Positions 5,046-53,255 of a stretch of DNA of 64,000 bases are shown in pieces. How positions within the stretch are numbered: the first letter of the stretch is position 1; the number at the start of each line of letters is the position of its first letter. The position numbers and the translations under genes are program-made. Source of the DNA: Guillardia theta CCMP2712 (taxonomy: Eukaryota > Protista > Cryptophyta); assembly GCF_000315625.1 (NCBI RefSeq), contig NW_005434557.1:36866-100865 (forward strand). Direction: 5' to 3'. Below the pieces are notes generated by a model. That model worked only from the letters and a program-made list of their open reading frames with translations. It was not told the origin of the DNA and ran no database searches.

Positions 5046-5380
5046 TAGATTCAAGTCGAAGCCGGAAATCATGAAACTGATCGTTCCTGCCGATTTCAAC
5101 AAGTTCAGTCCTTTAAAGATACCCGGCACTGTTGTGGCTCAGCGGCCAGCGTCTTGCATACACTTCAGAAGCGTCAAGCGCCACTGAGTATTTTTGCTGT
5201 GCGTCTCATCTAGAAGAATGACGTCGAAAAGCAGACACCTTGATGAGGAAGTTGATGAAATCTTGTGCAAGCTGAGCCTCAATAGCCAATTTTCGCAGGT
5301 TGTGCAAGTCGATTTGAACTTTCCAGCCTTACCGTGTGCAATGCATAAACCACAAGCTAGAAACAAACAACTTCATCTCG

Positions 5381-6899
5381 TCAGAAGGGTCTGAATTGGA
5401 GCAAGCCGCCAAGTTGACCGAAAATACCCGGAAGCAGATTGTCATTGCGAAGTCTCTGTTGCAGCCTGTCGTGTGCTGGATTGCTTCTATTCGTAGCATG
5501 ACTGTTAACCTGTAGAACATCCATACGATCTCTAGCTGATAACTTTTCAATATCCCGCATGCAACGGCAACCAGAATCTTTGTTGACGTCATCTCCACAA
5601 CGCCAGCAGAACGTTGTTCCACATCGGCAGCGCATTGCGTTGCATCCTTCTGATTTCTCAACCCAAAAGTTACAAGATGGGCACTTTTTCATTCCCTTTC
5701 TGCTAACAAGGCCAAGGAACTTTCTGTCCTCTTTTGAACCTGAATTCAGCATCGCATTGTCCTCACAAGAAGTAGTCTGATGCCACTTCGCCTTACATTT
5801 GAGGCAGTATGAGCGCCGACAAGCAGGGCAAATGTACTTTTCCTTCTCATTAAGAGTTCCAGTCTCGATGACATTGCTACAAGCTGGTGTTGGGCAGAAA
5901 AATAAAGTGTTGGGACTCCGTTCCAAGAACAGCTTCAAGGAGAAATTTTCAAACTTTTCCATGCACTCTGCATTTTCACTCAAACATCCACGAATTTCCT
6001 AGGCAAAGGTGTCACAACAACAACATACTCCATAAAGAAGGGAATGACCCACCTGTACAGTCAGAGGGGCTGCACATCCATCTTGGGGACACACAAGGCT
6101 TTGTTGAGCAACTTGCCCTTCCTTCACTTTGACAGTGACGTAGTTGGTGGCGCAATCAAAGCAGAAGCGATGACCGCAGCGAAAATAACACACCTGTATG
6201 GAAGAAATGAATGAGGGGCAAGATGGATTGAGATAGCTCAATTACCTGATCTCCTCGAGGGATGTCATCAAGACAAATGGGACAAGTGAAAGTTCTGGAA
6301 ACGGTGGATGAAATACGCAGCCGGTCTGTCATATTGTTGTCGACAGACTCGCTCGTAGAACTGCGACGCCGTGTATCTTGTTGCCGTTCTCTCTTGGAAC
6401 TTTGTAGAGAAGTTTCTTGCACTATCTTAACGTCGTCTTCAGTGGCAGATGTCTCAGGTCGAGAAATACGTCGTGAAGTAGAGTTCGCATCGTTTAGGTA
6501 TATCCTAGGCTCTTTGTACGTTCTTGAAACAAAAGTGTCATCTTCATCCGTGCTTACATCATCCACCAATATTAATCCCTGTTTGCTGCTGGGAGACCTC
6601 TGCAAGTTGGCGTGGGTTTTCCGCGCATTTCGTTTGCTTTTATTCGGCCTGTGCGGGATCCCAGGGTAGTTTTCCCAGGAGTTCTCCTGCATGGTCAGAT
6701 CAATCACATCGGTAGAAGCATATCGACTCCTATTCGTCTTTGCTTCTTCAGATGAATCGGTATTACAGCTTGATACTTCTGTCGTGCTATGCTCTGCACG
6801 CTGCACCTTTTGTGGATATTTTTCTGCGAACGATTCCTTAACGAGCGATGATTCTGGACTGGACAGAAAGTTGTTGAGTCGCATGTTGACAGGCTCCAT
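5381..6899 (-). CDS. RBR (RING1-IBR-RING2) E3 ubiquitin ligase, copy 1, about 3 exons
   Basis: RING1 CPICLDD..CGHRFCFDC..CPQDGC; IBR FCPTPAC..CPACRRSYCLKCKAKWH..C; RING2 KKCPSCNFWVEKSEGCNAMRCRCGTTFCWRC. Short GT-AG introns near 6195-6245 and 6002-6052. Confidence 0.92.
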
Positions 6900-8912
6900 T
6901 TATCTGAATCAGAGGTTAGTGCTCACCCAGATTTGAAATGTTGACGTATCAAACTAGCTGACTGACTAATTTATTCTAACCAATCTAGCTACCATTCATC
7001 TAACAAACAAACAAACAAACAAACAAATTTATCAAGTGAACACTTTGAGCGCTGACAACTCTCTCCACACCAAAACAGCATGCATAAGGTATTTGAAACT
7101 GATGCTTCAGATAGATCTGTAAGAATTACTTCTACCGAGTTGCCCACCATCCATGCAAAATGGAAGCCCAACTCGTCATTTACCAAACTAGCCAATCTGC
7201 TCCTTGATGCAAGCCGAACCGAATTCAAATCTCGGCATTACGGTTGAAGTCTGGAACGGCAAACTAACTATTTCATAACATCTTGCGGCATTCATAAAGC
7301 TTGTTTCATCCTCATTCAAATCTTTGACCTCTCTCTCTCTCTTACGTCTCCATCACCCTTCCTCTCGTCTTCCCCCTCCTCCTTCAGCCGCCATACCTCC
7401 AGTTCTTGGTTTATTCCCAGCACCAGAGATAGGGGGTGGTATCAAAGAGTTATGAGACAGGGTGGGTACTTTCCAGTGGAAATACAGAAGGCTCGCATGT
7501 ATAACTAGGGGGTACTTCACCCACCCCAGGGGCTCGAATGGACATCTCACAGAGTGGATGTTGACTGATGGGAGGGGTAGGTGACTGCTAGGAAAAGGGT
7601 CGCCACAAGGGGGCACAGAGGGGGTGGGGTACAGTGATTCTCCGAAGGGGATAGGTGGGGTACTTCTAGGGATTTCTTCCGCCACACTCGGGGTTGGGGG
7701 GTGGGGGGTACCCGGCCTTGTGAAACCGTCTGGCAACCGCTGTGGCCGCACTCAGTGCCGCCTGGCCTTTACTCAAAGCCCGGCCCGGTGACAGGCCCCG
7801 GCACTGCTCAGCTGCAAGGCGTCACTAGTACTGACCCGGCACCGTCCGGGCTACTGGCGGCCAGGCAGCCTTCGTGACGCCGGGACTTCTGAACCGTTTC
7901 CCAACTTGGCATGGCCCAGTGGCCCTAACTTGAAAGGCTGATCATCATGTAGGGGACTTCGAACAAGTTCAACTTCCGGCGCGGCCGCAACTGCAGCCCG
8001 GCCTGGCTAACGTGACTGGAGTCCAGGAGGCGGTTGGCATGGCCCAGTGGGTTCAATTAATCATTGAATCCTGGACTTCAGCATGTCACAACTTGAATGA
8101 TATTGAATATTAATACCGGGCCTCGCTCGGCCTCCGACCGTCCGGAGCACTCCGAGAGTGCCAGGCCCGCAAGCCGCTGGCAGCAGCCGTGATCACTCGC
8201 CGGAGCGGAACTCAGTCGGAAGATCCGAGGGCATCCGAGTAATGCATACTGATAACATGCTCAGCACGTCCCGCCAAAGCGGCCTTTTTTCCCATCATCG
8301 CCAGCACTGATTGACTCTTGCAGGATGATGCGGCGGTTGCGCTTTCTGTGGTGGCTGGCGGATCGCTTGGCGAAGGCTTGCCAAGGAAACGGCGACGGAG
8401 CACAAGTTTGTTAGACTCAGTTGTACTATGCCAAAGTCACGCAGATATCACATCGACCTCAGTTGTAACAAGACAGTTTTTGCTCAAGACCGAATTTAAT
8501 GCACACAAAACCAGAATTGAGGAGCACATGTGAAATTCAAGCATCCAGACATGAGAGGACCTTAGCAAGACGGCTAGGAAAGCCCCCTCCGAAGTTCATC
8601 CCACACGCTACATGGGCCGCCTTGACACGTCAGTCCGGCGTCTTGGTTTACAGGACGGCACTGTTGTGGCTCAGCGGCCAGCGTCTTGCATACACTTCAG
8701 AAGCGTCAAGCGCCACTGAGTATTTTTGCTGTGCGTCTCATCTAGAAGAATGACGTCGAAAAGCAGACACCTTGATGAGGAAGTTGATGAAATCTTGTGC
8801 AAGCTGAGCCTCAATAGCCAATTTTCGCAGGTTGTGCAAGTCGATTTGAACTTTCCAGCCTTACCGTGTGCAATGCATAAACCACAAGCTAGAAACAAAC
8901 AACTTCATCTCG

Positions 8913-10431
8913 TCAGAAGGGTCTGAATTGGAGCAAGCCGCCAAGTTGACCGAAAATACCCGGAAGCAGATTGTCATTGCGAAGTCTCTGTTGCAGCCTG
9001 TCGTGTGCTGGATTGCTTCTATTCGTAGCATGACTGTTAACCTGTAGAACATCCATACGATCTCTAGCTGATAACTTTTCAATATCCCGCATGCAACGGC
9101 AACCAGAATCTTTGTTGACGTCATCTCCACAACGCCAGCAGAACGTTGTTCCACATCGGCAGCGCATTGCGTTGCATCCTTCTGATTTCTCAACCCAAAA
9201 GTTACAAGATGGGCACTTTTTCATTCCCTTTCTGCTAACAAGGCCAAGGAACTTTCTGTCCTCTTTTGAACCTGAATTCAGCATCGCATTGTCCTCACAA
9301 GAAGTAGTCTGATGCCACTTCGCCTTACATTTGAGGCAGTATGAGCGCCGACAAGCAGGGCAAATGTACTTTTCCTTCTCATTAAGAGTTCCAGTCTCGA
9401 TGACATTGCTACAAGCTGGTGTTGGGCAGAAAAATAAAGTGTTGGGACTCCGTTCCAAGAACAGCTTCAAGGAGAAATTTTCAAACTTTTCCATGCACTC
9501 TGCATTTTCACTCAAACATCCACGAATTTCCTAGGCAAAGGTGTCACAACAACAACATACTCCATAAAGAAGGGAATGACCCACCTGTACAGTCAGAGGG
9601 GCTGCACATCCATCTTGGGGACACACAAGGCTTTGTTGAGCAACTTGCCCTTCCTTCACTTTGACAGTGACGTAGTTGGTGGCGCAATCAAAGCAGAAGC
9701 GATGACCGCAGCGAAAATAACACACCTGTATGGAAGAAATGAATGAGGGGCAAGATGGATTGAGATAGCTCAATTACCTGATCTCCTCGAGGGATGTCAT
9801 CAAGACAAATGGGACAAGTGAAAGTTCTGGAAACGGTGGATGAAATACGCAGCCGGTCTGTCATATTGTTGTCGACAGACTCGCTCGTAGAACTGCGACG
9901 CCGTGTATCTTGTTGCCGTTCTCTCTTGGAACTTTGTAGAGAAGTTTCTTGCACTATCTTAACGTCGTCTTCAGTGGCAGATGTCTCAGGTCGAGAAATA
10001 CGTCGTGAAGTAGAGTTCGCATCGTTTAGGTATATCCTAGGCTCTTTGTACGTTCTTGAAACAAAAGTGTCATCTTCATCCGTGCTTACATCATCCACCA
10101 ATATTAATCCCTGTTTGCTGCTGGGAGACCTCTGCAAGTTGGCGTGGGTTTTCCGCGCATTTCGTTTGCTTTTATTCGGCCTGTGCGGGATCCCAGGGTA
10201 GTTTTCCCAGGAGTTCTCCTGCATGGTCAGATCAATCACATCGGTAGAAGCATATCGACTCCTATTCGTCTTTGCTTCTTCAGATGAATCGGTATTACAG
10301 CTTGATACTTCTGTCGTGCTATGCTCTGCACGCTGCACCTTTTGTGGATATTTTTCTGCGAACGATTCCTTAACGAGCGATGATTCTGGACTGGACAGAA
10401 AGTTGTTGAGTCGCATGTTGACAGGCTCCAT
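8913..10431 (-). CDS. RBR E3 ubiquitin ligase, copy 2 (identical)
   Basis: Identical ORF translations at +3532. Confidence 0.9.
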
Positions 10432-38184: not shown

Positions 38185-40736
38185 GTACCATGGCTTCGAG
38201 GAGGCATTGGACGACTCGATTCCGGAGCTCATCGATCTTGTTGACGACACGAAGATTGAGCGGCAGAAAGTCAGCGAGGCGATGAAATGTCCTCATGGGT
38301 TGTATAAGGTCTTTGACGTTTGACACCGCGTCTACCTGAACGCTGCCGATAGACCAATACAATCAATTACAGCAAACGAAGAGCAGACAGGGAGAGAGCG
38401 GCAGGTGAGGGGAGGAGAGGAGGTGCTGAGAAGACGAGAGCACGTCGTGACTCGGGGATGAACACAAGGGTTGTTGAAGATCACTGAGGAGATGAAGGCT
38501 TTTTTTCCTGGCGCGAGAGACAACTGCGGTGACCGAGTTCCAGCCTGATCCGTCTGATCCTTTGATTGACGGAGTTGGCACAGGGACTCTACTCCAACCG
38601 GATGTCTACACCGATGAGGAGTTGTACTCGGTCGGATACACCAAGGAGAAGATCGAGACGCTCCGACGACCTCCATCAGGTGCCCTGCCCTCGAACCTGA
38701 GCTTGTCTCATCGCATTCAGAGCGACATGTTCCGTACTTCGAAGAGCTGCTTGCTCCCGTGGAGTCTGCTCGGTCAGGGGAGGCGCAGGGGAAAGAGGGA
38801 ACAAGGCAAGAGCTGGAGGAGGAAGCGGGTTGTGAAGGGCCAGTGGAACGAGACACCTTCATAGCTGCCATTGGAGGCTCCATCACATTCCGGTGATGAT
38901 CGTGACTGAAAGGATTCAACTCTGACCTTGGGTGTGTTCGCTCGTGTAAGCTTTGATCCCTCGTCTTCCTATCAACAAGCCAACCATCTGTGTCAGTATG
39001 TCGAGACCAGCAGATTCGAAAAGTTTGTTTTGTTTGAGTGCTTCGAACGGCTGAACGACTCTGATTCAGAGGAAGTCTGTCGCGGTGGAAGTTCAAGGCA
39101 GACATGCTTTGCCCTCGAGACGGACTGGTGTGTGCCGCTGCTTCAAGCTTCAAGAGTGACGAGACTTCAGTCCGCTCTCTTCTACAAGGATCGCATCTAC
39201 ACATTCGGGGGGCTGGACGATGTCCTGCCATTGTGTTCAAATTGCTTGTCACTTGCCTTTGTAGGACGCGAACGATCTCGATAACGTTGAGAGCTGCGGC
39301 CTTGACTTTCAATGGCGTCAAGAACGGTTTTCAACACCACGACTTGTCAGTCTCCTCCCGTCGGCATCATGAGATTGATTGCTTCTTGTAGACAAGCTTT
39401 CATTCCACCGCGCTGCTCAACGACCGCATCTACCTAATCGGAGGACAAGGCTTCGATCTGGAAACAAGGCAGCCGGCGAGTTGGAGCGCATCTGTAGGGG
39501 CGGCGGGTGATACCTGCTCCTCCAGGCATGGTGGAACCAAGTCAGCTGCCTGGATCTCACCACAGGGAGATGGACTGAGTGTCCGTCTATGAACAGAAAG
39601 GTGCTGTTAGCAGCATGCTCCTGACGTGCATGACGAGCAAGGCAGCGCTGCTACTTCCAGGCAGTGTCTGTGCATGGCAGGATCTACGCCATTGGGGGTT
39701 GGAGCACCGAGTCGGAGGTGCTGGACACGAATCTAGTGAGTGACGATGTGAAGGAGGGGAGGAGGGGGTGACGAGGGGCAGGGGATTCCGGGACTGAAGT
39801 GGGACTTGCGCCACCATATCACCAACACCGTCGAGTCGTTCGATCCACGGCATCTCCAGCTGCTCTCCCTGTTCAGTCGGTGATGGTGATGCAGAGAAGG
39901 GAAGTGGCGAATGGAACCCTCGATGTGTGCTCCGCTACAGGCCGGGGTCAGCAACGTCTCTCAGCTTCAACATCCCAAGAAGGTTCTTTGCTCCCTTCAA
40001 GCTCCTCCTTGATCACGTTGGCCCAGGTGCAGGATGGTAGCCGATGCTCGTTCGGGGCAGTCGGAGTTGGGCCGAAAGTCTATGTGGTTGGAGGATACGA
40101 CGGGTGAGCACGTGGCTGAGCAGACGACCAAACTCAACTCTTGTCAGGAACCACGTAATCGGGTCTGTTGAGTCGTTGGACGTCCGTGCAGGCCGCTGGG
40201 TCGAGGAGGCAGGCCGCTCGCTGCTCCTGACAGCAAGTGAGAAATCTGCAGGCGAGCTTGCAGACTCCGAGGATGTGCCTGGCGGTATCAGCGCTCAACT
40301 CAAAAGTTAGTCATGCCTTACGCTTGTTTCTCTTGTTTCACCTGCTCGCTCCTGCCTTGCTCTCTTCTACTTCGCCCTCTTCTACTTCGCTCTCTTCTAC
40401 TTCGCTCTCTTCTACTTTGCTCTCTTCTACTTTGCTCTCTTCTACTTCGCTCTCTTCTACTTCGCTCTCTTCTACTTTGCTCTCTTCTGCGCTCTCTTGA
40501 AAACTCTCTACTTCAGTTGATTGCGGCGGGAGGATGGGACGGCACGCGAGACCTCAAGGTGGTTGAGACTTATGACGGGAGCAGGCGAGAGACGCGAGAG
40601 ATGGAGCTCGAGCCTCGCTGACGTCATCGGCAGGTGGGACGTCGCGCCTTCTCTCCTTGTCCCTCGCTCCAACTTCGCAATTGTGACGTGCGACTCGAGC
40701 CTCGATGTGCACGGGGACGTGGACTATGTGAGATGA
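38185..40736 (+). CDS. Kelch-repeat beta-propeller exons
   Basis: DRIYTFGGLD, FHSTALLNDRIYLIGG, GRWTECPSM, GRIYAIGG, RCSFGAVGVGPKVYVVGGYDG, AAGGWDG..VETYD, RWDVAPSLLVPRSNFAIV. Confidence 0.9.
40361..40497. repeat. 15-bp intronic tandem repeat (TCTCTTCTACTT(C/T)GC), ~9 copies
   Basis: Direct reading. Confidence 0.9.
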
Positions 40737-40784
40737 AACAACCTCGCGCTCTATCAGAAGGACCATCTTCACTTACAGCAGCAG

Positions 40785-41691
40785 TCGCCTCGTAGCTCCT
40801 ACTCGCCTCGTAGTTCGTACCCGCCTCGTAGCTCGTACCCGCCTCGTAGCTCGTACTCGCCTCGTAGCTCCTACTCGCCTCGTAGCTCCTACTCGCCTCG
40901 TAGCTCCTACTCGCCTCGTAGCTCCTACTCGCCTCGTAGCTCCTACTCGCCTCGTAGTTCGTACTCGCCTCGTAGCTCCTACTCGCCTCGTAGCTCCTAC
41001 TCGCCTCGTAGCTCCTACTCGCCTCGTAGCTCCTACTCGCCTCGTAGCTCCTACTCGCCTCGTAGCTCCTACTCGCCTCGTAGCTCCTACTCGCCTCGTA
41101 GCTCCTACTCGCCTCGTAGCTCCTACTCGCCTCGTAGCTCCTACTCGCCTCGTAGCTCGTACCCGCCTCGTAGCTCCTACTCGCCTCGTAGCTCCTACTC
41201 GCCTCGTAGCTCGTACCCGCCTCGTAGCTCGTACTCGCCTCGTAGCTCGTACCCGCCTCGTAGCTCCTACTCGCCTCGTAGCTCCTACTCGCCTCGTAGC
41301 TCGTACTCGCCTCGTAGCTCGTACTCGCCTCGTAGCTCGTACTCGCCTCGTAGCTCCTACTCGCCTCGTAGCTCCTACTCGCCTCGTAGCTCGTACTCGC
41401 CTCGTAGCTCGTACTCGCCTCGTAGCTCCTACTCGCCTCGTAGCTCGTACTCGCCTCGTAGCTCCTACTCGCCTCGTAGCTCGTACCCGCCTCGTAGCTC
41501 GTACTCGCCTCGTAGCTCGTACTCGCCTCGTAGCTCGTACTCGCCTCGTAGCTCCTACTCGCCTCGTAGCTCCTACTCGCCTCGTAGCTCCTACTCGCCT
41601 CGTAGCTCCTACTCGCCTCGTAGCTCCTACTCGCCTCGTAGCTCCTACTCGCCTCGTAGCTCGTACTCGCCTCGTAGCTCCTACTCGCCTC
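40785..41691. repeat. 18-bp minisatellite, ~50 copies (TCGCCTCGTAGCTCCTAC)
   Basis: Uninterrupted 18-mer with three variable positions. Confidence 0.97.
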
Positions 41692-42116
41692 CATGTTGCT
41701 CCTCTCGCCCTTCACCTCCACGCCCTTCCTCGCTCCTACTCCTGCTGCTATTCTGCTGGGCTGACCACCCCTACCTTAAAACGAAATCACCCTACGTATT
41801 GTAGTGTTTTCCTAGCTCTTCAGTACTATTTGATCACCCCTCACCCCCGGATTGGTACTACCCTACCCTGTTCACCAATACTTGAACATGGCAAAGCGTG
41901 GTGAACAGAGCCATGCGTGTGAGCAGGTGAGAGGGGGAGGGAGAGAGAGGAGAGGGAGGGATAAGAGAAAGGGAGGAGAGGGAGGGACGAGGACGAGGAG
42001 ATAGGTTCGACGATGGATGAAGGGGGGGGGGGGGGAAGGAGGCAAGCGGGAGAGAAGAGGAGGGAACCGAGCGATGAATTCACAAATTTTGATACACTTG
42101 TTTTGCTCTTCATCAG

Positions 42117-44476
42117 ATGCTCGGGTTTGTCACAGAGGCTTTCAAAGAAGCTTCGAATCTGCAGAAACGAATCGAGCAGAGAAGAAGCGAACTCGACAAA
42201 CACAAGTCTCAGCTCCTCCTGAGGTCGCTCAAGGAGCGGGGAATCAAGATTGAAAAAGAGACTTCTTCTGCCATCAAGCCAAGCAACATCGTCAAGCTCA
42301 ACGTGGGAGGAACGAAGATAGACGTAAAGAGAAGCACCATCACTCGCTTCTCCTCCAAACTCAAGTGGATGCTGAGGTGAACTCGTCCTCTCCTCTCCTC
42401 CAGCTGAGCCTCTACTAGCGGTCGCTGGGATCACATCTACAAGCTCGACAATGAAGGACGGATTTTCCTCGACTATGATGCTGGCTGGTTCGACCCTATC
42501 ATCAACCACCTGGTGTACCGATCCTCCTCCTCTACCCCATCATCCTCCTCCTCACCACCACCACTCCCCTTCCTCCCCCTCCCCATCCTCCTCCTCCTCA
42601 TCATCATCATCAGCAGCAGCACCACCACCACCACCATCTGCATCCTTTCCTCCTGCCTTCCTGTTACTCGCGCTCACATAATGCGTAGCGGGAGCTCACA
42701 ATGCAGGACCCGACCATCCCCATACGGCAGCCGAAAGCCAGTCATGGCGATCAGTTCGGATTCCGGCAGCTGCAGAAGCATCTTGGCTTGGAGAAGCTGT
42801 TCTCGAGTGAAGGCGAGGTGGAGGCGGGAGTGATGAAGCCTTGGATGCAGGCCGTCTTGGCAGGAACCATCGTGACGACATTGGAAGCAGACGGCAGAGA
42901 CTGTGAGTTCCGCCTCCTCCATCGTGGAAGCCGCGATGGGTTCGAATGCTCGAAGGTGCAGAGCAAGAGCGCAGGTGTGGTCAACAGCATCACCATCGTA
43001 CGTGACACGGAAGGGAACGTGTTTGGGGCCTTTGTGGACGTGGGGAGAAGCTTTCACGAGCAATACATTGAGTCCAGCAAGGCGTTTCTGTTCCACTTGT
43101 CCAGCAGAGGCTCACAAGACCCGAAGCTCTACAAGGTCTATCCCGTCAAGGCCGACCAGAAGCACACAGCGGTGCGAGGAGTCCGAGCTTGCTGTGCCGT
43201 GCTGGGAGCTGGGCCGGATCTGAGCATATCGAACGCATGCAACGCCAACAACGAGAGCTCTTGCCACCTGGGCACAACGTACGAGAACTATGGGAGCCCT
43301 CACGCTCTCACCAACGGTCGCGTCAACTTCCAGGTGGCTGAGCTGGAAGTCTGGCAAGTCAAGCTGGAGCTGGTCGGAGCCGAGGGTGTCAAAGACGCGA
43401 ACCGCCGAGTGCCGACCAAGTCCGCCTCGCTCTTATCGGAGCTGACGCGAAGGGTCAAGGACATCGACAGCTGCGTGCAGGAGCTGCTGGGGGAGGGGGT
43501 GAGACTGCAGCAGGAGGAGGAGAACTTGATCGAGGACGGGAGAGATCTCGACGACGAGATGGAGTACATGGAGAAGATGGAAGAGAAGCACAAGGCACAG
43601 GAGATCATCTTCTTCAACGTCGGCGGGAGGAAGCATTACACCACCAAACAGACTCTGTCGCTCATCAAGGGTTCCAAGCTCTACATGCAGTACGCGAGTG
43701 GTCAAGTGCAGGTGCCAGAGACTGACTTGGATGACGACGGAGACATCTTCCTTGACATCAACCCCTACTGCTTCGGCAAGATCCTTTCCCAGCTGCGGCT
43801 TAGACGCCTGTACGAGGACCTGCCGGACAAGGAGCAGGACGAGATCAACATCGGCATCGTCGTGGACCCCCAGTACTTGGAGTCGTTCGATCGCATGTTG
43901 AACTTCTACCAGGTCGAGCAGTCCGACTTGGCCTGCTTCCGTTCCTCCATCTTGCCAGCTCGAGAGCGAGTAACCAGATTGCTCCAGCTGCTCCGACCCC
44001 ACATGCAGGAGATCCCTTGCCGATACGCCTCCCTCCTCTTCCGCGGCAGCCGCGATGGTTTCACGAGGGGCCAGCTGCAGACCAAGTGGAACAATACGAG
44101 CAACAAGCTGCTGTTGGTCAAGGACTCCAACAACAACATCTTCGGGGGCTTCGTCGACTCGAAGAACAACAACGCTTCCTCTAGCAGAGCCTTCCTCTTC
44201 AGCCTCGAGCTCACTGCTGACATCCATCAAGACTCTCTCACTGTCTGCAGGCTGATCGGAGCCATTCCCGACGGCTGCGCCTTCAACTTTAACGTGGGCG
44301 GCTGCTTCGCCTTCGGTAGTAGGCCTGACCTGTTCCTGTCCGAGAACTGCAACCAGAACCAGCAGAGCTCCTGCAACCTCGGGCAGACGTTCAACGCTCA
44401 CAACAACCCTCACCTCCTCACCAGTGGCTCTCTCAACTTCACCGTGATGGAGATGGAAGCCTGGGGCCTTCACTAG
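42117..44476 (+). CDS. BTB/POZ (KCTD/T1-type) - TLDc - coiled coil - BTB - TLDc protein
   Basis: BTB1 IVKLNVGG..RSTI..SGRW..GRIFLD; TLDc1 LLHRGSRDGF..RDTEGNVFGAF..AFLF..ELEVW; BTB2 FNVGGRKHYTTKQTL..GDIFLDINP; TLDc2 LLFRGSRDGF..KDSNNNIFGGF..EMEAW. Introns near 42376-42418 and 42513-42706. Confidence 0.92.
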
Positions 44477-44961: not shown

Positions 44962-47900
44962 CTACTGGCATAGAGTGTTGCGGAAGTTCACGTACTCCCT
45001 GTGCAGATGCTTCTTGATCCCATGCATCTCCTCCAGCAGCACCTGCCACCGCCTCCATCATCCTCCTTATCCTCTCCCGCCCCCCTCANNNNNNNNNNNN
45101 NNNNNNNNNNNNNNNNNNNNNNNNNNNNNNNNNNNNNNNNNNNNNNNNNNNNNNNNNNNNNNNNNNNNNNNNNNNNNNNNNNNNNNNNNNNNNNNNNNNN
45201 NNNNNNNNNNNNNNNNNNNNNNNNNNNNNNNNNNNNNNNNNNNNNNNNNNNNNNNNNNNNNNNNNNNNNNNNNNNNNNNNNNNNNNNNNNNNNNNNNNNN
45301 NNNNNNNNNNNNNNNNNNNNNNNNNNNNNNNNNNNNNNNNNNNNNNNNNNNNNNNNNNNNNNNNNNNNNNNNNNNNNNNNNNNNNNNNNNNNNNNNNNNN
45401 NNNCCTGCCCTCCTCTCAGCTCTTCCTGCCCGGTCTCTCGCCTCCCTTCCCTCCTACCTCCACGCACACGCACAGGTCCCGGTAGCCCCCGCTCAAGCTC
45501 GTGCCGCCAGACGGGTCGTACCTGCCCCACAGGCTCAGCCGCATCCCTTGGCTCGACCCGCTTGACTCCTCTACATCCCCTCAGCTCACTCCTCGCCTCG
45601 TCTCCCTCCCCCTCGCTCCCCGCTTCCCGCTCCCCGCTCCTGCTCCTCGCTCCTCGCTCGTCTTCTTCTGGTGCACGTACCGGTTCTTGATGTTGGTGAT
45701 GCTCATGTAGATCTCCCCGCCTTCCTCTCCCCCGCCCGTCTGTCGAAGGCTCGTCACTTCCTCCTCCTCGCCGTCTCGGTTCTCTCTGCCCTCCTTACCT
45801 CCACGTCCTCCGACATCACCCTCCCTCCTCCAGGCTGGTCCCACGCGCTCACCCCGTGCCCCACCACCGACTGACCCCGCAAGAAGCTCAACCACGACAG
45901 CACGTCGTCGATCGACGACACCACGACAGTACATCGCACCAGGTCGGTCAGGCACGAGGGGTCGCGCCTGTACGACCTCACCGTCTTCTGCATCGCTCGC
46001 GCGCAAGACTTGACGTTACCATGCTCCACCCGCCCCACCCGGTTCCACCCGGACACCCACAGCTGGAAGGCGGCGCTGACCTCCTGCGCCTGGAGGAAGA
46101 GCTGCTCGAAGTCTCGGCTCGCCTGCCGGATCTTCCCGTTCCTCCTCGAGTATCGCCGGCCCCGCAGGCCGAGCGTCACCCACAAGTACCGACGCCACGT
46201 CCGGGTGTCATCGCCGATCACCTCCTCCAGCTCTTGAGCGATCGCCCGGACTCGCGCGCTGATCTCCTGCACTACGTGCGAGCTCTCCTCGACGACGCTG
46301 GTCCAAGTGTCCTCGAAGCCTCGCATGGCTGCCTTGAGGTCCCTGAAGGTCCTGGCGTACGCCCGGTGATACTCCACCACGATCGCCAGCTCCACCAGCC
46401 AGCAACCTACCCCGAGGCACAAGAAGCCGAAGCTTTCAAGGTCTGTTGATATGATCCCAACAAACAGGCAGAATGCACCCTGGACAAGAAAGGCAGCCAT
46501 CCAGAAGTAGTGCTGCACGAAATGCGCCAGGTACATCATGATCATAAGCAATGAAGAAGAAATAATCTTTTGACTCGAGTTGCAGAATGGTCCTATCCCC
46601 GTCCCCTGAGTCGAGCACTGCACAAAGTCGGCTACCATGCAGGCCACGTTGGCCGTCAGCACCAGATGCCCCGTTGACAGCAGCAGCCACTTGGCTCGTA
46701 ACGGTGTGCTCAGCAGCCCCAGCAGCACCCCGCTCAAGAACAACAAGCTCCACGCAAAGCTGATGATCGGATCTGCCATGACCGATATCCTCACAGTCTT
46801 GGGCTTGACGGGCGTGCCCGAGCTCTTGTCCGGCAGCCAGACCTGGTCGGACATGATCGGGCCCAGCTGCTTGATCCCGAACACAAGGTACACCAGGCTG
46901 AGGAAGACGATGCAGCTTCTCGCCGGCAGCTTCACCAGGGCCGTCTCGAGGGAGTTGGTGGTGCGGAGGGCGAGGACCCCGTTGACGTCAGCGTCTCGGT
47001 ACTGCCTGAGCCTGTCGTTGAGAGGGAGGAAGCGCTCGTCCTTCTTGTAGTCCTCCACCAGCTTCTCGAGCGTCCGGATCGAGCTCTCGTCTGAAGCATT
47101 GTATGCTGTGATGTCAAGGCAAGATTCCACTATCTGAATGCAACTTTGAGCCTGCGACAGTGCTCTCGTGAACAGAGGAAGTTTGTCCAGGGTCTCGATG
47201 CCCCGCAGCGCGAAGTACTCGTTGAACTTGTCATACATCCCCGTCTCCTGCAGTACCTGCAGCACCTCGATCCCCCGAGGGTTGTGTTTCGAGAACTCCC
47301 ACAGCTTTCGGTCGATGTGCTCCTTCACCACCCTCACCAGACAGTGTGCTATCAGCTCCCCCGCCTCCCTCGCGCTTCTCTCGACATCTCCGGTTGAGTC
47401 TACGTACATGCCAGCCACTCCCTTGCTCCCCTTCCCTCTCCTTGTCTCCTCCCCCAGCCCGACCTCTGCCCTCCTCCCCGCAGGCAGCAGCATCGCCACC
47501 GCCTCCTGCACCGAGACTCCCAGCAGGTACTCGAGTATCGCCTCTCTGTCCCTCCGGACGCCTCCTGCTTGTATCAGCTCGCTCGCCCGCGCGCAGCTGC
47601 GTACCGACGGCTTCCTGCTGAGGCTCCCGCACGCGCTGGAGAGGGAGGTGCGTCCCTCGGACTCGTCCCGCAGGATGGGTAGCACGGCCTTGAGTCTCCC
47701 GGCGTCCTTGTTGAGCAGGTAGAGCGCTGCCAGCGCGTGCACGAGGAAGTCACTCTCACGGTCGTGCGCCTCGTCGATCGCTGCGAGCTCCTCCAGCACG
47801 CTGTGTTCCTGACCCCAGGTGATGACGGGCACGAAGACGGAGCAGTTGCACAGGTATCTGGCTCTAGTCACCCTTGTCTCGAGGGCAGCCAGGTAGGGCA

Positions 47901-48153
47901 CGCAGTCCATGTCGAGGTAGGTCTTGCCGGGGTAGATCTTGTAGACGTCATTTGACCTTTTCGAGAGAGTCTCGTGCAGGACGCTGTGGAGGCGATCTTT
48001 CAGAAGGGCTGTCTCGTGATGGCGGCTGTCGAATCGCTGGTACTCAGGATGGAGCCTGTAGACAAAGATGTGCGTGTGATCGCTTTTAGTGTCATCTAGT
48101 GACCGGGCTCGTTGATTGTTCATTTCAAAGATCATGAAGGGTGTTGCTTTCAT
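44962..48153 (-). CDS. TIR-like / SAM-like / 6-TM / RelA-SpoT-like nucleotidyltransferase protein, copy A (open frame; one exon hidden in N gap)
   Basis: 799-aa first-exon ORF plus short 3' exons. Motifs: HIFVYR..YLDMDC..SVFVPVITW..AVLPIL; EVLQVLQETGMYDKFNEYFALRGIETLDKL; six hydrophobic helices; VKSCARAMQK, LTDLVRCTVV, IKNRY, GGYRD, MHGIKKHLHREYVNFRN. Confidence 0.8.
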
Positions 48154-50009: not shown

Positions 50010-53000
50010 ATGCACAAGAGCAGGTCCGAGAGTAAGGAAAATGTACTTTTACCTACGCTTGCATCAAACCGAGCAAAGCGCCCAGTTTTGCACAAGCAAC
50101 AAACCGGGCTGCAGCCTGAAAGCAACTTACCACTGGCTGCTGCCAAGGACAACCTTCACTTCTTCGTCTACAGGCTCCATCCTCAGTCCGCCAGCAGCGG
50201 ACGTGAAGAAGAGACCGAGGCAAACACTGGTCATGACCAGCAGCTTTCAAGGCGCCTCCATCGCATCCTGCACGAGATCCTCTCCTCTGAAACTCAGAGC
50301 TTCTACAAGATCTACCCCGGCAAGACCTACCTCGACATGGACTGCGTGCCCTACCTGGCTGCCCTCGAGACAAGGGTGACCAGAGCCAGATACCTGTGCA
50401 ACTGCTCCGTCTTCGTGCCCGTCATCACCTGGGGTCAGGAACACAGCGTGCTGGAGGAGCTCGCAGCGATCGACGAGGCGCACGACCGTGAGAGTGACTT
50501 CCTCGTGCACGCGCTGGCAGCGCTCTACCTGCTCAACAAGGACGCCGGGAGACTCAAGGCCGTGCTACCCATCCTGCGGGACGAGTCCGAGGGACGCACC
50601 TCCCTCTCCAGCGCGTGCGGGAGCCTCAGCAGGAAGCCGTCGGTACGCAGCTGCGCGCGGGCGAGCGAGCTGATACAAGCAGGAGGCGTCCGGAGGGACA
50701 GAGAGGCGATACTCGAGTACCTGCTGGGAGTCTCGGTGCAGGAGGCGGTGGCGATGCTGCTGCCTGCGGGGAGGAGGGCAGAGGTCGGGCTGGGGGAGGA
50801 GACAAGGAGAGGGAAGGGGAGCAAGGGAGTGGCTGGCATGTACGTAGACTCAACCGGAGATGTCGAGAGAAGCGCGAGGGAGGCGGGGGAGCTGATAGCA
50901 CACTGTCTGGTGAGGGTGGTGAAGGAGCACATCGACCGAAAGCTGTGGGAGTTCTCGAAACACAACCCTCGGGGGATCGAGGTGCTGCAGGTACTGCAGG
51001 AGACGGGGATGTATGACAAGTTCAACGAGTACTTCGCGCTGCGGGGCATCGAGACCCTGGACAAACTTCCTCTGTTCACGAGAGCACTGTCGCAGGCTCA
51101 AAGTTGCATTCAGATAGTGGAATCTTGCCTTGACATCACAGCATACAATGCTTCAGACGAGAGCTCGATCCGGACGCTCGAGAAGCTGGTGGAGGACTAC
51201 AAGAAGGACGAGCGCTTCCTCCCTCTCAACGACAGGCTCAGGCAGTACCGAGACGCTGACGTCAACGGGGTCCTCGCCCTCCGCACCACCAACTCCCTCG
51301 AGACGGCCCTGGTGAAGCTGCCGGCGAGAAGCTGCATCGTCTTCCTCAGCCTGGTGTACCTTGTGTTCGGGATCAAGCAGCTGGGCCCGATCATGTCCGA
51401 CCAGGTCTGGCTGCCGGACAAGAGCTCGGGCACGCCCGTCAAGCCCAAGACTGTGAGGATATCGGTCATGGCAGATCCGATCATCAGCTTTGCGTGGAGC
51501 TTGTTGTTCTTGAGCGGGGTGCTGCTGGGGCTGCTGAGCACACCGTTACGAGCCAAGTGGCTGCTGCTGTCAACGGGGCATCTGGTGCTGACGGCCAACG
51601 TGGCCTGCATGGTAGCCGACTTTGTGCAGTGCTCGACTCAGGGGACGGGGATAGGAGCAGAGTGTAACGGTTTCTCGGATATAATCACTGTGAGCTTTCT
51701 GGCTATCATGATGTACCTGGCGCATTTCGTGCAGCACTACTTCTGGATGGCTGCCTTCCTCGCTCAAGGGGCTTACTGCTTCTACTCGGCTCTAGCTCTT
51801 GACAATCAGTTCAGGTACGTGATGGTCTGCCTCGGGGTAGGTTGCTGGCTGGTGGAGCTGGCGATCGCGGTGGAGTATCACCGGGCGTACGCCAGGACCT
51901 TCAGGGACCTCAAGGCAGCCATGCGAGGCTTCGAGGACACTTGGACCAGCGTCGTCGAGGAGAGCTCGCACGTAGTGCAGGAGATTAGCGCGCGAGTCGG
52001 GCGATCGCTCAAGAGCTGGAGGAGGTGATCGGCGATGACACCCGGACGTGGCGTCGGTACTTGTGGGTGACGCTCGGCCTGCGGGGCCGGCGATACTCGA
52101 GGAGGAACGGGAAGATCCGGCAGGCGAGCCGAGACTTCGAGCAGCTCTTCCTCCAGGCGCAGGAGGTCAGCGCCGCCTTCCAGCTGTGGGTGTCCGGGTG
52201 GAACCGGGTGGGGCGGGTGGAGCATGGTAACGTCAAGTCTTGCGCACGAGCGATGCAGAAGACGGTGAGGTCGTACAGGCGCGACCCCTCGTGCCTGACC
52301 GACCTGGTGCGATGTACTGTGGTGGTGTCGTCGATCGACGACGTGCTGTCGTGGTTGAGCTTCTTGCGGGGTCAGTCGGTGGTGGGGCACGGGGTGAGCG
52401 CGTGGGACCAGCCTGGAGGAGGGAGGGTGATGTCGGAGGACGTGGAGGTAAGGAGGGCAGAGAGAACCGAGACGGCGAGGAGGAGGAAGTGACGAGCCTT
52501 CGACAGACGGGCGGGGGAGAGGAAGGCGGGGAGATCTACATGAGCATCACCAACATCAAGAACCGGTACGTGCACCAGAAGAAGACGAGCGAGGAGCGAG
52601 GAGCAGGAGCGGGGAGCGGGGAGCGAGGAGCGAGGGGGAGGGAGACGAGGCGGGGAGCGAGCTGAGGGGATGTAGAGGAGTCAAGCGGGTCGAGCCAAGG
52701 GATGCGGCTGAGCCTGTGGGGCAGGTACGACCCGTCTGGCGGCACGAGCTTGAGCGGGGGCTACCGGGACCTGTGCGTGTGCGTGGAGGTAGGAGGGAAG
52801 GGAGGCGAGAGACCGGGCAGGAAGAGCTGAGAGGAGGGCAGGTGGGATGGACGATAGACGAGTCGAGCCAGTGCTGCACGTTCGTACCGGTGAAGGAGTG
52901 GGGGAGGACAGCAGGGCTGCGGAAGCACATCTGCGAGATACAGGTGAGGAGAGGAGAGGAGAGGAGAGGAGAGGAGAGGAGAGGAGAGGAGAGGAGAGGA

Positions 53001-53255
53001 GAGGAGAGGAGAGGAGTGGAGTGGAGTGGAGAGGAGTGGAGTGGAGTGGAGTGGAGAGGAGAGGAGTGGAGAGGAGTGGAGTGGAGAGGAGAGGAGAGGA
53101 GAGGAGAGGAGAGGAGAGGAGAGGAGGAGCAAAGAGGAGGGGGGAGAGGAGTAGGATGATGGAGGCGGTGGCAGGTGCTGCTGGAGGAGATGCATGGGAT
53201 CAAGAAGCATCTGCACAGGGAGTACGTGAACTTCCGCAACACTCTATGCCAGTAG
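50010..53255 (+). CDS. Copy B of the TIR-like/SAM-like/6-TM/RelA-SpoT-like gene, with a 1-bp deletion at ~51998 (truncated form, pseudogene or sequencing error)
   Basis: 672-aa ORF to 52028. GAGTCGGGCG versus GAGTCCGGGCG in copy A. Downstream exons 52507-52565 (ITNIKNR), ~52725-52788 (YDP..GGYRDLCVCVE), ~52841-52943 (..HICEIQ), ~53175-53255 (VLLEEMH..NTLCQ*). Confidence 0.8.

Follow-up and report, generated by a model that had tools for sequence, protein, structure and literature searches.

Does a single eukaryotic protein join a TIR-like module, a SAM-like module, a membrane block and a RelA/SpoT homologue (RSH)-like nucleotidyltransferase domain, and what could such a protein do? The question is raised by a gene in a 64,000-nucleotide stretch of the Guillardia theta CCMP2712 genome (assembly GCF_000315625.1, contig NW_005434557.1, contig positions 36866-100865), referred to below as the window. 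An earlier note, made from the letters of this stretch, had proposed these four modules in this order. The gene is present as a near-identical inverted pair, with copy A on the minus strand (48153-44962) and copy B on the plus strand (~50010-53255). Judged from its modules, the encoded protein looks like a receptor-enzyme that belongs to a large unannotated algal family. We assign a probability of roughly one half to the reading that it is a membrane receptor-enzyme in which TIR-SAM clustering would switch on an RSH-like pyrophosphotransfer that makes a messenger or drains ATP, as a defence.

The four modules are encoded together. A single exon without interruption encodes the TIR-like module, the SAM-like module, the membrane block and the first half of the RSH-like domain, and the remainder is joined to it in spliced RNA of copy B, so that the proposed combination in one eukaryotic protein held. 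The profile and fold statistics reported below lie well outside what chance would give. The predicted spliced protein has 886 residues and five exons, with exon 4 borrowed from copy B (Table 1). Transcript contigs from two runs, each belonging to a different study, showed GT..AG joints at 52447|52507, 52565|52725 and 52788|52842. Two contig runs are catalogued merely as 'RNA?', yet their contigs are spliced. The junction 52943|53175 is supported by one contig and, through their loose ends, by 10 raw RNA-seq reads. In copy B, raw RNA reads covered the exons and not the introns. A membrane patch specific to copy B was matched without mismatch by a transcript contig, showing that copy B is expressed, and overlapping transcript pieces covered this patch and the exon joints. 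RNA from copy B therefore supports the splicing that brings the GYRD and EIQ motifs together. The same joined sequence was present in the G. theta paralogues P0004 and P0006 and, through exon 4, in a transcript-derived protein of Hanusia phi (P0002). Proteins of the window also matched paralogues of G. theta CCMP2712 and Hanusia phi transcripts.

Both copies carry a defect in the assembly. In copy B, an extra C behind 51997 was present in all three contig runs that cover the site, two of them transcript-like and one unspliced, thus genomic. This identifies the frameshift, and with it the stop at 52028, as an assembly error. In copy A, exon 4 is missing from the assembly, and no exon 4 besides that of copy B was found on the contig. 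When the copies were aligned, the flanks of the copy A gap ended at 52842 and resumed at 53134 of copy B, so about 291 bases are represented by the gap. The corresponding stretch of copy B comprises exon 4 and an intron rich in (GGAGA)n/(GGAGT)n. This intron 4 (52950-53135) contains a long microsatellite of the two units, which probably prevented the assembly of copy A at 45089-45403. Both gene copies may be intact.

The RNA reads at exon 5 showed two further features. At 53172, the X20 data contain loose ends of 10 RNA reads that run onto exon 5, with an upstream consensus agreement of 0.7. This consensus fits exon 4 of copy B in its last ~20 bases only and diverges before them; possible sources of the divergent reads are a paralogue and the hidden exon 4 of copy A. 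Of 14 reads at 53243, 3 carried a T>C variant.

By profile and fold comparison, the C-terminal module is a divergent domain of the RSH synthetase superfamily. Searched on its own against the PDB, paralogue P0004 matched Tas1 (6ox6) at E 0.005, and a profile of 52 family sequences (A5) matched it at E 6e-10. In the profile alignment, GPVKrpeRAiQKvvRsYrrD…LTDLVRC stands opposite APIKSRERAMQKINNDYKGD…IKDLARN of Tas1, with the K…R…K…D..R half aligned residue by residue. PF04607 was matched below its cut-off by 10 of the 52 relatives (best E 5.6e-5); in relative P0101, the match was at E 1.8e-5. Ten residues are invariant in the 52 sequences: K75, R79, K83, R86, D97, R100, R175 (GYR), E211 and Q213 (ExQ), and R234. 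The closest paralogues aside, these sequences are 26-39% identical to the reference. All ten residues are present in the window protein, in NVKSCARAMQKTVRSY, LTDLVRC, GGYRD, CEIQ and FRN, and by these conserved residues the domain looks catalytically intact. GYR and ExQ were assigned to the RSH motifs by motif order and fold. The RelA/SpoT motifs VKSCARAMQK, LTDLVRCTV, GGYRD and CEIQ follow each other in the predicted order once introns are removed, the last being read from copy B, and motifs were found on the minus strand where the earlier note had placed them.

Structure prediction agreed with this assignment. An AlphaFold2 (AF2) model of residues 740-978 of paralogue P0006, built with the 52-sequence alignment, had a predicted local distance difference test score (pLDDT) of 81.9. 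With this model, each of the 50 best Foldseek matches was an RSH synthetase, FaRel2 among them. VIA returned RelQ (Z 12.8), SAS2 (12.0), CapRel (10.5 for 9erv and 9.6 for 7ztb) and Tas1 (10.0, 26% identity), and Z ~7 for the Pol-beta-type enzymes TdT and Pol lambda. A shape search of the ESM Atlas with the RSH-like domain gave unnamed, mostly eukaryotic clusters and bacterial RelA_SpoT clusters. The C-terminus thus models as a RelA/SpoT-type fold, as had been anticipated. The Pfam scan detected no HD hydrolase, TGS or ACT domain in the window protein or its paralogues, in line with the original remark that no HD domain is visible.

The N-terminal module has, according to structural models and profile comparison, a TIR fold and TIR ancestry. 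An AF2 model of window residues 1-398 had a pLDDT of 67.7 overall and showed an alternation of strands and helices; the values were 83-93 at residues 101-220 and 43-66 at residues 21-100 (strands A and B). In an exhaustive VIA search, with a stated noise level of Z 7-8, TIR domains made up 8 of the 9 top matches, with Z scores of 11.4 for RPS4, 10.8 for RPP1, 9.9 for Cat1, 9.7 for SARM1, 9.6 for AtTIR, 9.2 for IL-18Rβ and 9.0 for TIRAP. Foldseek with the N-terminal model was weak: no match fell below E 0.001, the TIR domain of L6 had a probability of 0.90 at E 0.08, and RPS4 was also among the top-probability rows. Ancestry was traced through relatives. The Pfam TIR_2 cut-off of 28 bits was passed by P0044 (34.2) and P0054 (28.6), both of which carry an RSH-like tail, and hhalign aligned the cryptophyte clade profile (A10) with that of the TIR_2-passing and flanking relatives (A11) over 135 columns, at a probability of 97.3% and E 2.6e-11. 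Phmmer and profile searches of the N-terminal 390 residues and a 16-sequence profile of the TIR region gave no match in the PDB, and searches of the ESM Atlas by features and by structure gave no usable match for the N-terminus.

The catalytic column of this module deserves separate consideration. The best PDB match of the P0044 TIR is the SARM1 TIR, a weak one (E 0.7); in this weak alignment the Glu of NVLMEF in P0044 stands at SARM1 chain index 90, which is E642. The window protein has His139 in this column (FLVHALAAL), and its close paralogues have His, Tyr or Leu. Distant relatives have Glu or Asp, with Glu in P0044, P0054, P0015 and P0142. His139 in the column of the catalytic Glu makes NADase activity doubtful, and the module is, from this residue pattern, probably an assembly scaffold and not an NADase. 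Of the TIR-like proposal, fold and ancestry were borne out by VIA and hhalign, and the NADase Glu is not present. The Glu-Glu of HSVLEEL after strand C was considered as the catalytic Glu and rejected, as the profile alignment puts the column in the next helix. Elsewhere in the genome, 17 loci are positive for Pfam TIR_2. A G. theta TIR with the Glu is reported, in a 2026 preprint, to make cyclic ADP-ribose (10.64898/2026.04.20.719644).

Between the TIR-fold module and the membrane block lies the SAM-like module. A 14-sequence profile (A7) matched SHIP2/EphA2 (E 6.6e-6) and AIDA-1 (E 1.4e-4) in the PDB, followed by Caskin and Eph receptors; SAM domains accounted for 22 of its 25 matches. SAM_1 or SAM_2 was detected in 4 of the 14 relatives (best E 2.3e-4), and two G. 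theta paralogues are listed in UniRef as 'SAM domain-containing protein'. Pfam gave no match on the SAM-like piece of the window protein. The AF2 model places helices at residues 294-303, 306-317, 322-335 and 356-369, with a pLDDT of just 58-70 and below 50 at residues 333-351; the second half of the module is divergent in this clade, and fold searches with the N-terminal model were dominated by the TIR part. These profile matches support a relationship to SAM domains, the five-helix fold aside, so that the proposed SAM module stands at the level of the family profile.

The membrane block is conserved in the paralogues. A Kyte-Doolittle scan detected five segments, and a sixth (transmembrane helix 4 [TM4], residues 530-546) remained below the hydropathy threshold. 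The block of six helices proposed before is thus supported by hydropathy as multi-spanning, with a helix number of five or six. Conserved Cys residues and N-x-S/T sites occur in the loops after TM1 and TM3, in keeping with an outer face. A protein with six helices that lacks a signal peptide would have both of its ends on the cytosolic side, with access to ATP. TMEM120, TMEM220 and DUF948 appeared as weak sub-threshold Pfam matches of the block and were treated as noise, and a feature-based search of the ESM Atlas with the block gave no usable match.

Copies A and B encode identical protein at residues ~100-519 and 594-785. Their differences are confined to the first ~100 residues and to patches within TM4-TM6 and their loops; between residues 500 and 599, we counted 29 non-synonymous and 10 synonymous changes. 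A mosaic of this kind suggests that the copies have undergone gene conversion, while the N-terminus and the membrane patches were spared or diversified locally.

Rather than a lone oddity, the gene is a single branch of a large family of paralogues whose architectures vary. An exhaustive HMMER search of 1.84 billion representatives (E ≤ 0.001) found 468 proteins (cluster representatives), mostly via the RSH-like domain, from cryptophytes, MMETSP/EukProt transcriptomes and metagenomes. A region-restricted word search returned only cryptophyte paralogues and unnamed metagenome proteins. Public names in the family are 'hypothetical protein' or 'SAM domain-containing protein'. In the G. theta genome (87.1 Mb, 669 contigs), the RSH-like domain had 88 exon-level matches at roughly 50 loci. 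We sampled 20 paralogous loci: 4 combine TIR-like, SAM-like and RSH-like domains, 2 are TIR-like plus RSH-like, 2 SAM-like plus RSH-like, 1 has a single domain, and the remaining 11 have two RSH-like domains per open reading frame (ORF) of 1000-1500 codons. ORFs of this two-domain class are intron-poor and have no detectable TIR-like or SAM-like module. The module order of the window protein recurred in full-length paralogues and in the Hanusia phi transcript. Two metagenome-derived relatives have other partners: P0044 consists of TIR_2, SAM, a transmembrane helix, F5/8 type C (discoidin), a second transmembrane helix and the RSH-like domain, and P0038 of HEPN_DZIP3, a protein kinase, SAM, a membrane block and the RSH-like domain. 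Such partner modules are typical of sensing and conflict systems, and a receptor or defence role draws its main circumstantial support from them. Canonical RSH genes (Pfam HD_4 plus RelA_SpoT) were found only at C47:131263-132737 and C24:131220-132315.

How could such a protein work? A signal would be sensed at the membrane block; this is suggested by the outer loops, which are among the few parts that differ between the copies, and by relatives in which two helices enclosing a discoidin ectodomain take the place of the block. The signal would alter the clustering of the SAM-like and TIR-like modules, and clustering would activate the C-terminal domain to transfer pyrophosphate from ATP to the 3' hydroxyl of a purine nucleotide. 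The product would be (p)ppApp- or (p)ppGpp-like, and would serve as a second messenger, or its synthesis would drain the ATP pool as in Tas1, with growth arrest or death as a defence. A role as a sensor that produces a nucleotide messenger in immunity or cell death is thus a hypothesis, which gains circumstantial support from the relatives with an ectodomain, kinase or HEPN module. A broader proposition is put forward only tentatively: cryptophytes, and other protists known solely from metagenomes and transcriptomes, may have a large family of receptors with a cytosolic RelA/SpoT-type pyrophosphokinase as output, and an alarmone-type nucleotide or Tas1-like ATP depletion would then signal innate immunity or cell death in the cytosol, with TIR and SAM modules providing the assembly.

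Several points weigh against this receptor-enzyme reading. Pfam gave nothing significant on the window ORF and the full-length paralogues, so each domain call depends on profiles of the family, on predicted structures and on paralogues. The C-terminal model is that of paralogue P0006, which is ~63% identical here, and the sequence match to Tas1 is limited to the donor-ATP half and does not indicate the acceptor. The enzymatic role is predicted for all members from sequence and structure. The helix count and topology come from the hydropathy scan, and the presence and frame of exon 4 in copy A are deduced from copy B. A stand-alone alarmone hydrolase (PF13328) was searched for in the genome, and only the two canonical RSH genes matched; this result neither supports nor refutes a nucleotide product. 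To our knowledge, eukaryotes have no known cytosolic receptor for (p)ppNpp.

Other explanations have to be compared with this one. The C-terminal domain could pyrophosphorylate the 3' CCA of tRNA like CapRel and FaRel2, which would make the protein a membrane-anchored suicide effector that stops translation. CapRel is among the best structural matches, FaRel2 is in the Foldseek list, and the immune-type partners of the relatives (TIR, HEPN, kinase) fit an abortive-infection logic. We nevertheless consider this unlikely, as the sole significant sequence link leads to Tas1, a nucleotide pyrophosphokinase; moreover, fold similarity does not separate the RSH sub-classes, and no antitoxin-like or pseudo-zinc-finger domain was seen. 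Alternatively, the protein could be a housekeeping (p)ppGpp enzyme of an organelle, i.e. a membrane-anchored variant of plastid RSHs without a function in sensing or defence. Algae make ppGpp in plastids, which counts for this explanation. Divergent synthetase-only RSHs of eukaryotes are also on record (PMC3153485). A housekeeping function is improbable given that the genome already has two canonical HD plus synthetase loci, that ~50 loci with shuffled architectures are unlike a housekeeping gene, and that partners such as TIR, SAM, HEPN and discoidin do not suit it. A hydrophobic N-terminal plastid-targeting signal is not evident in the sequence (no targeting predictor was applied).

The RSH-like domain might instead be a pseudoenzyme, a non-catalytic nucleotide-binding domain or scaffold, with signalling by SAM/TIR assembly alone. 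This has a precedent in the same protein, where the TIR-like module of this clade no longer has its catalytic residue, but it is quite improbable: ten charged or polar positions, among them the Asp and Glu of a metal-site pattern, do not vary across 52 divergent sequences, and such invariance is the signature of a working active site. An artefact, i.e. a pseudogene pair or a mis-joined assembly in which the modules do not belong to one protein, could be suspected from the gap over exon 4 in copy A, the frameshift in the assembled copy B, and the inverted arms, whose 100% identity could reflect assembly problems. For copy B, this is already largely refuted, and overall it is very improbable. 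Reads of three runs restored the missing C, transcript contigs span the membrane patch and every exon joint, the large first exon holds most of the modules without interruption, and paralogues and the Hanusia phi transcript keep the same module order.

Table 1. Positions of the gene copies and their features in the window, and contigs of the loci with two RSH-like domains
Feature	Position	Strand	Remarks
Copy A exon 1	45799..48153	-	Single open frame, 785 codons, ATG at 48153; GT donor after 45799; holds TIR-like module, SAM-like module, membrane block, linker and first half of RSH-like domain
Copy A exon 2	45681..45739	-	Ends IYMSITNIKNR; same joint in copy B transcripts
Copy A exon 3	45458..45521	-	YDPS…GGYRDLCVCVE
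Copy A gap	45089..45403		Ns; hides exon 4 (ICEIQ motif) and most of the microsatellite intron
Copy A exon 5	44962..45042	-	VLLEEMH…NTLCQ, TAG stop; equivalent to copy B 53175-53255
Copy B exon 1	50010..52447	+	Assembled frame stops at 52028; 813 codons with the read-supported C behind 51997
Copy B exon 2	52507..52565	+	GT..AG joints in transcript contigs X1 and X3
Copy B exon 3	52725..52788	+	Joints in transcript contigs
Copy B exon 4	52842..52943	+	VGWT…HICEIQ; 34 codons, phase 0 to phase 0; sole readable copy
Copy B exon 5 and stop	53175..53255	+	X3 contig 13 and loose ends of X20 raw RNA reads
TIR-fold module	47449..48081	-	Residues ~25-235; core strands 28-34, 77-84, 105-113, 156-164
HIFVYRL	48072-48052	-
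KTYLDMDC	47925-47902	-
SVFVPVITW	47841-47815	-
His139 codon	47737..47739	-	Aligns with the catalytic Glu of NADase TIRs (E642 in SARM1)
AVLPILRDE	47688-47662	-
SAM-like module	47038..47304	-	Residues 284-372; best conserved 296-329
SAM-like stretch (motif)	47268-47167	-
Membrane block	46375..46914	-	Residues 414-427, 462-482, 489-511, 530-546, 550-568, 575-593
Divergent membrane patch	46375-46600 (copy A); 51650-51880 (copy B)
Helical linker, predicted cytosolic	46135..46374	-	From last TM helix to RSH-like domain; helices 2-25 and 42-63 of the paralogue AF2 model
RSH-like domain, N-terminal half	45799..46134	-	Exon 1; NVKSCARAMQK and LTDLVRCTV; aligned to Tas1 residues 243-326
NVKSCARAMQK	from 46017	-
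LTDLVRCTV	from 45951	-
Two-RSH-like loci L009-L018, L020	Contigs C13, C12, C86, C1, C56, C62, C40, C30, C206, C226, C17

Other features of the window were recorded as well. Convergent with the 3' end of copy A, the ORF at 42701-44476 (+) encodes a BTB plus TLDc protein, with no evident functional link. At 40641-41800, a tandem array with an 18-base unit and at least 51 copies lies inside an ORF. A 300-base direct repeat (5124-5423 and 8656-8955) is 100% identical, with a spacing of 3532 bases.

What is new here is the architecture and the eukaryotic branch of the RSH superfamily; the component folds were already known. A literature search of incomplete coverage found nothing on a TIR-SAM-TM-RSH protein or on a cryptophyte RSH expansion. 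RSH enzymes are known as stress enzymes of bacteria and plastids and as bacterial toxins. If the receptor-enzyme reading is true, alarmone-type chemistry would be placed in eukaryotic receptor signalling or programmed cell death, as a eukaryotic counterpart of bacterial systems of the CapRel or Tas1 type. Next to cyclases, cGAS-like enzymes and TIR NADases, it would make a fourth type of nucleotide enzyme coupled to a receptor, and would give a function to a family whose public names are merely hypothetical or SAM domain-containing. The catalytic tail is ~210-240 residues long and has clear candidate active-site residues, which makes it directly testable. The protein would also be a further case, among an increasing number, in which eukaryotes have reused domains of bacterial conflict systems to build new architectures. 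In the bacterial systems, RelA-type domains are reported as effectors (PMC7159879).

Among solved proteins of known systems, a significant sequence match was obtained for Tas1 alone, a type VI effector of Pseudomonas aeruginosa and (p)ppApp synthetase. Tas1 also had the highest identity in the structural alignments, and the donor-ATP K…R…K…D..R pattern is common to both. The acceptor-side half does not align by sequence, and Tas1, a toxin domain that bacteria secrete, is paired with an immunity protein, whereas the domain described here would be the cytosolic tail of a eukaryotic multi-pass membrane protein that has TIR-like and SAM-like modules. The best fold matches were RelQ/SAS1 and RelP/SAS2 (5ded, 6fgk, 6ex0), with Z 10.6-12.8 over ~145-150 residues. 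They have the same domain size and are likewise synthetase-only, without an HD hydrolase. In contrast to the window protein, which remains under the Pfam RelA_SpoT cut-off, they are soluble bacterial homotetramers, and identity is 12-15%. The toxic small alarmone synthetases (toxSAS) CapRel and FaRel2, tRNA pyrophosphokinases of phage defence and toxin-antitoxin systems, share the fold (Z 10.5 and 9.6) and can be likened in logic, with an RSH domain held off until a trigger arrives; however, they are bacterial, soluble and regulated by a fused or separate antitoxin, and no such module is present here.

Within eukaryotes, the plant and algal plastid RSH1-4/CRSH proteins and the divRel synthetases of Atkinson et al. 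2011 (PMC3153485) belong to the same superfamily as the RSH-like domain of the window protein. With divRel, some eukaryotes are seen to possess synthetase-only RSHs, and divergent synthetases of this type are reported from fungi, Dictyostelium and diatoms (PMC3153485). The canonical C47 and C24 genes have an HD domain and a Pfam-positive synthetase, whereas the present family has no HD domain, is undetected by Pfam, is predicted to be membrane-bound and is greatly expanded. SARM1 (ARM, SAM, SAM, TIR) likewise contains SAM and TIR in one protein, and its TIR matched at Z 9.7. Here, TIR precedes a lone SAM-like module, the reverse of the SARM1 order, an ARM domain is absent, and His139 stands at the position of E642; the output of SARM1 is its TIR, and the output here is presumed to be the RSH-like domain. 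Adenylyl cyclases with six TM helices and receptor guanylyl cyclases offer an analogy only, that of a membrane sensor with a cytosolic nucleotide enzyme activated by oligomerisation. Their class III fold is unrelated to the Pol-beta-type RSH fold, and we claim no homology between the two.

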